DNA of 64,000 nt from Phaeosaccion multiseriatum. Taxonomy: Eukaryota > Protista > Ochrophyta, other classes. A program made the position numbers and the translations under genes. Positions 17,498 to 21,314 of this stretch are shown here, piece after piece (position 1 is the stretch's first letter; each line of letters starts with the position of its first letter). The DNA lies in assembly GCA_965112735.1 (NCBI GenBank), contig OZ218957.1, positions 2,542,001-2,606,000 on the forward strand, in the 5' to 3' direction. The notes beneath the pieces are model-generated. The model saw only the letters and a program-made list of their open reading frames with translations, ran no database searches and was not told the origin of the DNA.

Positions 17498-18081
17498 GCC
17501 GTCAGATCTGAAATGAAAAACCAGCAGCAGCCACCTAGAGAGGCCACCAAAACTCAGGCGGTGCCACCAGCAGCGGCTCCAACGGCAGCAGCTCCAACGG
17601 TGCCACCCACAGCAGCTCCAACGGCTCCTACACCGGCGCCAACGACAGCAGCACCAACAGCAGCTGCAACAGCAGCTCCCACAGCGGCTCCAACGCCCAC
17701 AACGAACGCCGCGAAGAAGTGGCAAGATGGTAAGGGATGTGGAGGTTCTTCACACACACACACATACACACACACACACACACACGCAGACGCACACACA
17801 CACGCACACACACACACACGCACACACGCACACACACACACACACACACACACACACACACACACACACACACACACACACACACACGCACACACACACA
17901 CACACACACACACACACACACACACACGTGCCCACACACACACACACATACATCACTCACACATCACTCACACATCACACACACACACTCACTCACTGAT
18001 TCACTCACTCACTGATTCACTCACTCACTCACACACACCCACACACACACCCACACAGGAGAGGTGCGCTTCAAGAGCCAG

Positions 18082-18215
18082 ACGAGGAAGGAGCTCGGCA
18101 AGGAGTGGGCAGCTCCAATTTATTACACCGTCGGCGACCCTGACAGCCCTTTGCCAGAGTCGCCGACGGTGTAGTATATCGGAGCTGCCCACTCCTTGCC
18201 GAGCTCCTTCCTCGT
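18082..18215. repeat. 134-nt fold-back hairpin inside Fanzor exon 2
   Basis: ACGAGGAAGGAGCTCGGCAAGGAGTGGGCAGCTCC at 18082 is the exact reverse complement of 18181-18215; pairing continues with a few mismatches to a 6-nt loop. Confidence 0.95.
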
Positions 18216-18365
18216 GGAGCCGGGCGAGAGGGTGTGCTTATCCATGATTACGCTTCAGACGGCCGGGCCGGTGCACGTGGAAACATATTCGGAGCGGCTG
18301 AGAACACGGTCAGGGACGCAGAGAATGCCCGTCCACGTGGCATTGTCCTTCGAGTCTCAGCAGGG

Positions 18366-18563
18366 TGTGGAAAGTCAGTCGTATGTCAGTGGCCCAGGCC
18401 TAGGCAACGCCCGTTTCTCACTATCCTCCTGCAGGTGGTCGTTTAGGACAGTGCATAGATAAGCTAATAGATACAAGGCCGGCTGTCAGGCTAGCTTTGG
18501 GGTGCTGCTACCTTATCTGTGTGTCTAGTCCGTTTCGTGGAGGTCTAAGCACGACTTTCCACA
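18366..18563 (+). mobile_element. 198-bp solo-LTR-like (TG..CA) insertion with 11-bp terminal inverted repeat and 4-bp TSD
   Basis: TGTGGAAAGTC...GACTTTCCACA flanked by AGGG (18362-18365 and 18564-18567). Removing it plus one AGGG restores the frame SFESQQ-G-AHDGNLLYG. Confidence 0.85.
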
Positions 18564-21314
18564 AGGGAGCACACGATGGGAATCTACTATACGGGTTGCG
18601 AGGCCTCACAGAGCCCTCGCATTCGCGTTCGGAGGACGTGAGGAGGAAAAACCGTGGCAAGCAGCTTCTGAAGGCAGAGGCGAGGAAGCAGGCGGAGCAC
18701 CTGTGGTCCGGCCTCCAACGCCTTCCACCCGGTCTTTCGGCAGACGCCCGGCGCGAGTTGGAGTTGTTCTATGAGAGTCTCGTCAGGCGTCAAGTCACGA
18801 TGCTAAGGCGGCACGTGTACGGAGAGGGCAAGAAGAAGGAGGGGCAGCCTCCGCAGCAGGAGGAGGGGCAGCCTCAGCAGGGGGGGGAGGAGGAGCAGCC
18901 GCAGGAGGCAGGCATCGCGTCGTCTTTTGTGGAAGAGGGGGGTACTTGGGGCGCCGAGAGGCACGAAAAGGTGCGCCAGCTGCTCGACAAGGTCGTCGTC
19001 AGGGACGGCAAGGACGCCGAGAATCTCGAGCTCTGGAAGGGGGCTTGGCTGAAGGACCTGCCTACCTTGGTGAAGCAGCATGTGTTGGCCGTCTTCACGG
19101 CGTGCATCCCCCTCTGTGAGGGCGGGCACGAAGGACGTGCAGCGTGTAGTGGACCAGCGAGTGTCCCGGGCGCTGCAGGTGATGGGGTCGCTAGTCTGGC
19201 GCGGAGGGAGGGAGTCGAGACTGTGGCGCAAAGGGCGGGAGGTGCAGTTGTTCCAGGTGGCGGCAAAGCACGGGGGGGGGCATCTAAGCAGGCGTGCCAT
19301 GGGAATGGGGGGCTGTTGCACGGTCGCGGGTGCAGAGAGTACGGCCAAGACGTTCTCACGGATGGGCGATTTCATCCGCGTGGTGGGCCCTGCCAAAGAC
19401 GCCCTTGGCAAGGGTGCCAACCCAACTCGCTGGAGGGAGTGCTTCACGGCGGAGGAGCAGTCAGCGGACCCCTTCTTTGTCGGGGGCATCGATCCCGGGT
19501 ACAATGTCATGCTGACGGTGTGTGACCCTGCTCGGGAGTGCTACTGGAACATCGGCCAAGGGTGGGCGGCCCGATCCCTCACGAGCCACGGGCACCAGCA
19601 ACGTCGATTGCAGGCCAGCATGGAGGCAAACGCACCAGCAGGGAAGGATGGAAAACCCGCACAGAACCCGAAGTTGCGGAACCTCTTTCGACGCGCCATG
19701 GGCGAGCGATGGCGGTGCATATCGAGGAACTCTCGTCGCGCCAATGACGTGGCCAAGAGGGCATTGCGTTGCTTATTGGACACTGCGGTTCTCGGCGAGG
19801 TGGAGGCGCGCGTCAGGCGCGGCAAGAACACCAACCCCTACCGCTGCATGTTGCGCATGGGGGAGCTGCGGCAGAGCCTCAAGCAGGTGAGCTTCAAACA
19901 GCCATGTCTCCTCGCTGCTAGCTTCCTTGCCTTGCCTCCTCGCTCCTTCTCGTTGCATCGCTTGCTTGCTTGCCAAATTTGTCCCTTCACTCAGCCATGC
20001 ATCTCCTCCCTCGCTCCTCCTGGTTGCCGTGCCCAACACCGCCGCCACCAACACAGGCCAACACCAACGGCGCCGCCTGGAGGGTGGGAACGCGCCCGAC
20101 CGTGCTTGTGGGGCAAGATGAGACGTACACCACGTCATCATGCTCTAACCCCGCCTGCGCAGCCATCCTGAGCAACGTCGGCCCGGTCAAAGTCGTCCAC
20201 TGCACCCAGTGCGGCGGCTACCAGCACCGCGACGCCTCGGCAGCGCGAGCCATCTTGGCCTGCGCTCTCTACGAGGTGAAGGAGTACTTCACCAATCCAG
20301 AACCCCAATCTTCCCAAAGAGGCTCCAGCGCCAGGGAAAACCCGCTGCCGGGATAATGAGCAGATGGTAAGTAGGTAGGCGGCACCCCCCTCCTCTGGTA
20401 CCAGTCTGCCTACTCATCAACCCCCCCCCCCCCCCTCCCCCTTTGCTGCGTGCCTCGCTCCGTTTCACCCCCCCCTCCCGAAAACAACCAAAAATCCCCC
20501 GATTTGCCCCGAAAAACTCGCTCCAAATTCCAAATCCACGCCTTTGCGCATCCACCCAAATATAAAAAAACGAGCTGGGGACGGGTTATCGTGTGTATCT
20601 GTGACTTCAATCCTATCCACGCCTCGCTCGGACTGCACCCCGCCCCGCCCCGCCGCGCCGCGCCTGCTGCTCTCCCCGCCCTTCCTGCGCATCACGTATG
20701 GCCAGGAGAGGAAGGAGGCGACCACCGACTCCAACGCCAACAGAACAGTAGGTATTGACCGCCCTCGAAGCTCCCTCCCTCCCTCCCTCCCTCTCTCTCT
20801 CCCTCCCTCCCTCCCTCGCTCGCTCGGGTGTATGGGTAGGGTAGGGGAGGTGCGAGCAGAGCCCTGCTGTGCTCTGCTTCCTCCCTCGCTCGCTCGGGTG
20901 CATGGGTAGGGTAGGGGAGGTGCGAGCAGAGCACAGCAGGGCTCGGGGGAAGGGGAGGGCGGTCGGTGTGTGGGGTGAGTAGGGTTCAAAGCCTTGAGTA
21001 TGTACCAACTGTGTGGGGTGAGTAGGGTTCAAAGCCTTGAGTATGTACCAACCCTACCCATACACCCACACATCGCCCTCCCCTCCCCTCCGAGCCCTGC
21101 TGTGCTCTGCTCGCTTGGGAAGTGGGTCCGGTATGCATGCATATGTATGTATACCGGTGTGCATGTATATGTATGTAAAGTGAGTCACATGTTTAGGTAG
21201 TCACACACTCTGTCTTGTCGCCAGTCCACAACGCCGATCCATAAGTGCCCATCGACACACGACTTGTGTCCGTCCAAAGCGAAGGTCCAAAAACTGAAAC
21301 CGTCCCTCATCGTA

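Follow-up and report, generated by a model that had tools for sequence, protein, structure and literature searches.

The 64,000-nucleotide stretch of Phaeosaccion multiseriatum DNA analysed here (hereafter the window) very probably contains, as judged from its sequence, a single pseudogenised copy of a Fanzor-type gene that seems closest to the Fanzor2/IS607 lineage. The locus occupies approximately positions 18059-20356 of the forward strand, perhaps together with an upstream exon at 17513-17729. This copy is a decayed and highly divergent Fanzor2-like gene; the kind is already known, and the copy is a fairly ordinary relic rather than a new working system. Fanzors form the eukaryotic branch of the TnpB family and are RNA-guided DNA endonucleases; to our knowledge, they are the only such endonucleases known in eukaryotes.

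Catalytic motifs and relationship to Fanzor2

The fingerprint of Fanzors consists of DPG in RuvC-I and an alternative catalytic Glu that precedes the zinc finger by six residues, a combination found in <1% of TnpB homologues (Yoon et al., PMC10711439). Both could be identified at the locus. The part of the nuclease that runs from RuvC-I to RuvC-II (19125-19886, forward strand) contains GGIDPG at 19482-19499, with the catalytic Asp at 19491-19493; in the three-frame translation of 17400-20400 it reads GGIDPGYNVMLTVCDP from 19482 onward, and the motif falls on the GIDlG/GIDPG column of a Fanzor2 profile (described below). The last exon (20057-20356, forward strand), which ends with the stop TAA at 20354-20356, contains DETYTTSSC, where six residues lie between the alternative Glu (20120-20122) and the first Cys. 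The column of this Glu is conserved in ≥90% of sequences, and the residue aligns with Glu467 of L79, a TnpB-like Fanzor2 of mimivirus. The same exon contains a zinc ribbon of the form C-X4-C...C-X2-C (20141-20158 and 20201-20212) and the RuvC-III motif HRDASAARAI (20225-20254); from 20114 to 20254 the translation is QDETYTTSSCSNPAC...HCTQCG...HRDASAARAI, the same span reading QDETYTTSSCSNPAC...HCTQCGGYQHRDASAARAIL. All four Cys of the ribbon and the invariant R58-D59 are present, and the Pfam family PF07282 was matched above its cut-off. In VLGEVE (19788-19805), a Gly stands in place of the canonical RuvC-II Glu, on the iGk column of the profile, where canonical TnpBs have that Glu. Canonical TnpB has a RuvC-II Glu ~50 residues ahead of the zinc finger together with D-hydrophobic-G; neither was found at the locus, where Gly and DPG stand instead. 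The Bao-Jurka motif, D-X(125,275)-[TS][TS]-X-X-C4-X(5,50)-RD (PMC3627910), could also be recognised after splicing: the Asp lies 153 residues before the Glu, followed by TYTTSSC and then by C-X4-C-X14-C-X2-C-X5-RD. The active site of the ancestral protein would be a rearranged RuvC centre made of the DPG Asp (19491), the alternative Glu beside the zinc ribbon (20120) and the RD Asp (20231), a clustering of the Asp-Glu-Asp triad that is suggested by the L79 alignment only.

Database comparisons pointed in the same direction. The last exon passed the threshold of PF07282 (Cas12f1-like TNB; E 3e-6, 27.7 bits versus a cut-off of 26.3) and showed weak NCBIfam matches to guided_TnpB and IS607_TnpB. 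Its best relative of solved structure was L79 (PDB 9b0l_P, E 3.5e-4), in an alignment that placed the Glu of the last exon on Glu467 and its RD on the RuvC-III RD. Mutation of Glu467 and of Asp324 abolished cleavage by ApmFNuc (PMC10530073), and a close relative of L79 (P0038) reads CGIDPG at the position of the catalytic Asp. For profile comparison, a Megavirus Fanzor2 from a viral contig (L045:418-1896, P0001) was used to fetch 120 relatives, and the resulting Fanzor2 profile comprised 110 Fanzor2/TnpB relatives. Against this profile the last exon scored 30 bits with an hhalign probability of 95%. The spliced core, in which X stood for the frameshift position, gave a colinear match (probability 93%, E 3.2e-7, query 17-517 on template 40-463) in which GIDPG was aligned with GIDlG, the Gly of VLGEVE with the RuvC-II Glu column and DETYTT with nEylTT. 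When the RuvC-I exon was compared with the profile alone, hhalign scores of 24.7-24.8 were obtained (P 0.011-0.013, template 154-395), and all 80 shuffled controls were lower (maximum 22.5, mean 13.6, standard deviation 2.6). On these comparisons, Fanzor identity appears well supported from the C-terminal exon and moderately supported from the RuvC-I exon upstream of it. In the ESM Atlas, the RuvC-I exon yielded just weak TnpB-flavoured leads. No match was found in viral contigs searched with either nuclease exon, an exact look-up of the 363-aa open reading frame (ORF) in public assemblies returned no record, and no close relative appeared in any collection searched.

Within the Fanzors, the evidence leans to Fanzor2. 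The best PDB match of the C-terminal exon is the Fanzor2 L79, with every Fanzor1 chain falling short of E 10; the overall identity of the core to viral Fanzor2 is only ~19%. The nearest metagenomic relatives, found in a scan with a 4-row alignment, were two IS607-like loci (L046 and L047) with 35-38% identity in the zinc-ribbon region. Both of these metagenome contigs carry compact AT-rich IS607-like units, in which an ORF with a MerR-type helix-turn-helix and a serine recombinase is followed by a Fanzor2/TnpB ORF. Their nuclease ORFs (572-693 aa) have DPG and the alternative Glu; as listed, these long ORFs overlap the recombinase in another frame, and their true starts are probably later. A tblastn search of the window with the two TnpA proteins of these loci gave nothing better than E 1.2 for an IS607-type serine recombinase, no transposase domain was found in the large ORFs of the window, and no terminal inverted or direct repeats marking transposon ends were found around the gene. 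From the known members of the family, the ancestral protein would bind a guide RNA produced from the 3' end of its own gene and would cut double-stranded DNA beside a short motif. The 3' flank was predicted to fold slightly better than shuffled sequences (z -2.0), and an Rfam search of 18030-22000 gave nothing above gathering scores, with sub-threshold microRNA-precursor matches on hairpins only.

An earlier sequence-only reading of this DNA had proposed a TnpB-family gene of the Fanzor kind with the spacing of Fanzor2/IS607-TnpB and no transposase visible in the window. The analysis agreed with it on each of these points: DPG, the alternative Glu, the C4 zinc ribbon (PF07282) and the RuvC-III RD place the gene among Fanzors, the spacing and the best matches fit the Fanzor2/IS607 type, and the tblastn and domain searches of the large ORFs bore out the absence of a visible transposase. 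The motifs it had quoted (RuvC-I, QDETYTTSSC..C, HRDASAARAI and WLKDLP) are all present in the three-frame translation, and the C-terminal region matched both PF07282 and the Fanzor2 profile.

Exon structure, lesions and the N-terminal region

Reading frames are named here by a coordinate at which one of their codons starts (17400, 17401 and 17402), and they were followed along the locus by third-codon-position G+C content (GC3). Over 18040-18430 GC3 was high in the 17401 frame (0.72-0.82), over 18580-19150 in the 17402 frame (0.72-0.87), over 19120-19960 in the 17400 frame (0.72-0.87) and over 20020-20320 again in the 17402 frame (0.74-0.82), with the other frames at ~0.5 in each case. Since GC3 tracks the proposed frames and drops in intron 2, it supports the coding reconstruction, whose product would comprise ~710 residues in total. 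Intron 2 (19887-20056, forward strand; 170 nt, phase 0) has the boundaries CAG/GTGAGC...ACAG/G, the slash marking the junction, and links the 17400-frame RuvC-I exon to the 17402-frame zinc-ribbon exon. Inside it GC3 is at background and a coding signal is present in no frame. The separate matches of the two flanking exons to the Fanzor2 profile abut across this intron at template positions 395/396, that of the RuvC-I exon ending at 395 and that of the last exon starting at 396. As a prediction, intron 2 is well supported. It appears that the gene would have resided in the nuclear genome long enough to acquire the GC3-rich codon usage of the host and at least one spliceosomal intron, namely that at 19887-20056.

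The intact ORF that a working Fanzor needs was not found; with a stop in an inverted duplication at 18172-18174, a miniature inverted-repeat transposable element (MITE) in the exon at 18366-18563 and a one-base slip near 19105-19135, the copy would no longer be able to make protein. The inverted duplication (18082-18215) consists of two 64-nt arms, 18082-18145 and 18152-18215, which are separated by a 6-nt spacer and are 92% complementary according to repeat finding and script checks. Its right arm carries the in-frame TAG at 18172-18174; from 18061 to 18365 this frame has no other stop. The 8% divergence of the arms favours an old, real duplication over an assembly fold-back, and through this divergence the gene copy also dates decay events.

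The second lesion, at 18366-18563, is a MITE-like insertion of 198 bp. Its terminal inverted repeats are 11 nt long (TGTGGAAAGTC/GACTTTCCACA), and the 4-bp target AGGG is duplicated on either side of it (18362-18365 and 18564-18567). Cutting out 18366-18567 (202 bp) produces a single open frame from 18175 to ~19108, which shows that 18175-18365 and 18568-19108 were formerly contiguous coding sequence. Another, diverged copy of the MITE lies at ~15267-15480. It should be noted that a GT at 18367, in the left MITE repeat, and an AG at 18564-18565, made by the target duplication, delimit 199 nt whose removal also keeps the host frame; the donor, GTGGAA, is weak. Such a GT...AG arrangement is that described for introner elements. 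With this frame-restoring pair, which comes in part from the target duplication, the MITE may be an introner-like element observed in action.

Rebuilding the gene additionally requires a 1-nt frame change at ~19105-19135 (forward strand), possibly at the C5 run at 19108-19112, where both frames are open. GC3 switches frame between the segments 19030-19149 and 19120-19239. Public runs of two samples contain 0.93-0.97 of the words sampled from 18560-20360, a share that leaves room for a few differences and by which a single-base error is neither confirmed nor excluded.

Upstream of the nuclease motifs, the long exon begins with an N-terminal extension (18059-18365, forward strand; GC3 of 0.72-0.82 in the 17401 frame versus ~0.5 in the other frames), which is broken by the inverted duplication, and continues at 18568-19108 (forward strand; 17402 frame, GC3 of 0.72-0.87), where a basic stretch, RRKNRGKQLLKAEARK, lies at 18641-18688. 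That 18059-18365 was coding is indicated by its high GC3 together with the recovery of the frame once the MITE is removed. Profile alignment places the putative start of the TnpB-like core at LQRLPPG (18713), and an E/Q/G-rich low-complexity insert follows at 18821-18913. Upstream of the core there would be 48 residues containing the basic stretch, 63 and 37 residues flanking the stop, and perhaps a 72-residue exon 1. The segment 18568-19108 is colinear with the Fanzor2 profile only within the whole-core alignment. WLKDLP (19046-19063) was considered as a TnpB signature; it aligns with kWLKEv of a canonical TnpB profile at a score below zero, and the Fanzor2 profile left it unaligned, so that such a signature is not established.

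The N-terminal pieces had no match in Pfam, NCBIfam, the ESM Atlas or the Fanzor2 profile. Highly variable or disordered N-termini, often with nuclear localisation signals, have been described for Fanzors (PMC10530073, PMC3627910). Considering both the blank searches and this known variability, the extension is neither proven nor in itself novel, and any length or role of the ancestral N-terminal region is one that we infer.

Candidate exon 1 (17513-17729, forward strand) is the weakest part of the reconstruction. It starts with ATG, has an open frame with a P/A/T-rich low-complexity stretch ending in NAAKKWQD, and is followed by a GTAAGG donor. Its GC3 in the supposed frame is only 0.33-0.44 versus 0.72-0.87 in the remaining gene, a Pfam search found no family for it, and it has a 14-nt exact match and P/A/T-rich repeats in common with a neighbouring ORF (at 16744-16885). 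Candidate intron 1 (17730-18058, forward strand; 329 nt, phase 1), which is mostly CA microsatellite, would join it to the long exon through ATG/GTAAGG...ACAG/G; these GT-AG ends and the formal joining of the frames are its entire support.

The structural claims of the sequence-only reading fared unevenly. Its 202-bp insertion, said to rejoin the frame upon removal, could be resolved into the 198-bp MITE plus the 4-bp target duplication, and excision does give an open frame; the stop that it had placed in an arm of an inverted duplication is indeed the TAG in the right arm, 18152-18215. As to a reconstructable gene, the frames join on paper, but the result is a pseudogene with three lesions, of which the frameshift had been mentioned only as a possible homopolymer error. 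The claim that both introns join in frame holds for their GT-AG ends and frame joining, with intron 2 well supported and intron 1 lacking further support. By contrast, an unknown N-terminal domain in an ancestral product of ~700 aa was not borne out, considering the aberrant codon bias of exon 1 and the absence of any family match for the N-terminal pieces, although the total of ~710 residues on paper agrees with its estimate. It had further suggested a possible undescribed algal subfamily with intact relatives; in the collections searched, no close relative turned up.

Comparison with known systems and alternative explanations

Among known systems, the giant-virus Fanzor2 proteins (mimivirus L79, that is, ApmFNuc or ApmFz2, PDB 9b0l; and Megavirus P0001) provide the best PDB match and the best pairwise match. 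They have in common with the relic G-I-D-P-G, the Gly at RuvC-II, (D/N)E-x-x-TT, the C4 ribbon and RDxxAAxxIL in the same order and with the same spacing, the distance from Asp to Glu being 153 residues here and 143 there. On the other hand, core identity is ~19%, and the relic differs in the C-X4-C first knuckle, an E/Q/G-rich insert in the N-terminal lobe, a longer upstream region, a spliceosomal intron, GC-rich codon usage, the lack of an adjacent IS607 serine recombinase and its broken state. In the green alga Chloropicon primus and in molluscs, Fanzor2 genes captured by cut-and-paste transposons have been named Fanzor2* (PMC10711439). By description, the Chloropicon case is similar in being a Fanzor2-like nuclease in an alga-type nuclear genome without an IS607 transposase, whereas around the relic neither terminal inverted repeats nor target duplications nor a partner transposase were found. 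CrFNuc of Chlamydomonas reinhardtii is an intron-containing Fanzor1c found in Helitron2 elements (PMC10530073; PMC3627910). It likewise represents an intron-bearing Fanzor in a GC-rich alga-type genome, and copies of CrFNuc-type families are often truncated or decayed; however, with the C-terminal exon of the relic a Fanzor2 structure but none of Fanzor1 scored within E 10, Helitron features were not seen and phmmer returned no relative of the RuvC-I exon among 1.84 billion representatives. Canonical bacterial TnpB (IS200/IS605, for example, ISDra2) resembles the relic in the zinc ribbon and RuvC-III, with 14-15 bits against a profile of 20 phage and bacterial TnpBs, and a RuvC-I strand pattern W-x-x-x-F...GIDxG was weakly aligned. 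In contrast to canonical TnpB, the relic has Gly at the RuvC-II Glu, DPG rather than D-hydrophobic-G, and the alternative Glu.

Several observations weigh against a pseudogenised Fanzor2-like copy. The RuvC-I exon gave no hit in a search for homologous proteins (length filter 148-470 aa), in a phmmer search of 1.84 billion representatives or in Pfam PF01385, and nothing relevant in the PDB; without a significant single-sequence match, its assignment depends on one weak profile match together with motif, order and spacing. A single-sequence AlphaFold model of this exon (19125-19886) was uninformative, with a predicted local distance difference test score (pLDDT) of 33. The 180-residue piece before the frameshift showed no significant similarity to the Fanzor2 profile by itself, the first zinc knuckle is C-X4-C instead of C-X2-C, and the frameshift near 19105-19135 could be an assembly error. 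In addition, no second copy, transposon ends or guide RNA could be defined. The missing single-sequence match of the RuvC-I exon would also fit a chance resemblance, in which GC-rich open frames happen to contain TnpB-like motifs. However, a curated Pfam threshold was passed, the PDB match aligns the catalytic residues, the whole-core profile match is colinear with E 3.2e-7, the shuffle control was exceeded and the matches of the two exons meet precisely at the splice junction. By these results chance resemblance is effectively refuted.

The other alternatives concern the state, the origin and the extent of the gene. It is rather unlikely, although to be taken seriously, that the upstream ~400 residues are foreign, exon 1 and 18059-18365 being parts of a neighbouring or rearranged gene that fold-back rearrangements moved beside a shorter Fanzor. 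The wrong codon bias of exon 1, its 14-nt match and P/A/T-rich repeats in common with ORF 16301-17065, three palindromic rearrangements within 3 kb, the lack of homology for any N-terminal piece all speak for such a transfer. Nevertheless, MITE excision joins 18175-18365 to 18568-19108 in one open frame of uniformly high GC3, contiguous in coding with the core, and an in-frame ATG is absent between the MITE and the core start. An origin of the relic from an integrated giant-virus (Nucleocytoviricota) segment that carried an IS607-type Fanzor2 and was later ameliorated to host composition seems improbable. The best relatives are indeed mimivirus-type and IS607-like viral or metagenomic Fanzor2 proteins and green-algal giant endogenous viral elements are reported to carry Fanzors; yet overall identity to viral Fanzor2 is only ~19%, GC3 is host-like and a spliceosomal intron is present, the large ORFs of the window include no viral hallmark gene, just kinase and ankyrin domains, and no serine recombinase was found in the window. 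It is very improbable that the gene is functional or was so until very recently. Under this explanation, the frameshift would be a homopolymer assembly error, the MITE would be spliced out (GT 18367...AG 18565, 199 nt) and translation would start past the inverted duplication, for instance at the SMITLQ ATG at ~18245, giving a product of ~580 aa, which is near the usual Fanzor size of ~600 aa (PMC10530073). The catalytic Asp, Glu and Asp and the four Cys are intact, the frames are open with high GC3, the GT-AG pair in the MITE and target duplication restores the frame, the frame slip falls at a C5 run and the word share in public runs is below 1.0. Nonetheless, GTGGAA is a poorer donor than those of the other two introns, GTAAGG and GTGAGC, and GC3 remains high across the duplicated segment upstream of 18245, suggesting that the ancestral frame ran across it. 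Moreover, three separate rescues are required together.

Going beyond a decayed Fanzor2-like copy, one may combine several proposals: an undescribed, very divergent Fanzor lineage, in which the nuclease ends an N-terminal region of 200-260 residues or longer without known relatives, with intact, expressed members elsewhere in the genome and with the interrupting MITE being introner-like. Taken jointly, these proposals are doubtful.

Surroundings of the locus and significance of the copy

Three palindromic fold-back duplications are located within 3 kb of one another (15628-16255, 17003-17497 and 18082-18215), the last of which is the duplication inside the gene. The fold-back at 15628-16255 covers 634 nt with 94% complementarity. 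That at 17003-17497 is nested, with arms 17056-17183/17200-17327 (99%) and 17003-17055/17445-17497 (100%) and an unpaired segment of 117 nt, and it folds back the 3' end of ORF 16301-17065. Break repair and assembly are candidate origins of the fold-backs, for which Rfam gives sub-threshold microRNA-precursor matches only. The neighbouring ORF-like stretch at 16301-17065 (forward strand) contains one stop. It starts with MDALPEGVEPDDEE, proceeds through an E-rich and a P/A/T-rich repeat, and ends with ...NAAKWAPEWDEAWMDFRKLPAVEDWPEEMK...KKGKAKKEEVDDLALKALDLA; no Pfam match was found for it, and it has a NAAK(K)W motif in common with the supposed exon 1. On the other side of the gene, right after the stops TAA TGA, positions 20357-20372 read ATGAGCAGATG/GTAAGTAGG, a consensus-like splice donor that is followed by a short hairpin (AGTAGGTAGGC...GCCTACT); this donor-like sequence could belong to the first mini-exon of a downstream gene or could be due to chance.

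Farther away, the window contains a ~5.6 kb GTGA-based satellite with extreme GC skew (9271-14917), which is matched in inverse orientation by a CACT-type tract at 22043-22188, and a second satellite (50775-54159) made of 3.4 kb of the 16-mer GCAGGCAGATAGGTAG with 97% match. Ordinary eukaryotic host genes with a protein kinase domain (PF00069, E 2.6e-15) and ankyrin repeats occur nearby, at 35108-36310 on the forward strand and 38288-39514 on the reverse strand, and the large ORFs of the window were free of viral or transposase-like content.

A new N-terminal domain would have made the locus remarkable, and nothing tested supports such a domain. The copy has diverged so far that its RuvC-I half escapes searches of billions of proteins with a single sequence. 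Although a dead copy is not assayable, its worth lies in its use as a probe for intact paralogues in the same genome. Fanzor diversity is relevant to both genome editing and transposon biology, and the copy provides one more example of it: in a GC-rich eukaryote, a Fanzor2-like gene that lacks an IS607 transposase and has a spliceosomal intron and the codon usage of its host.

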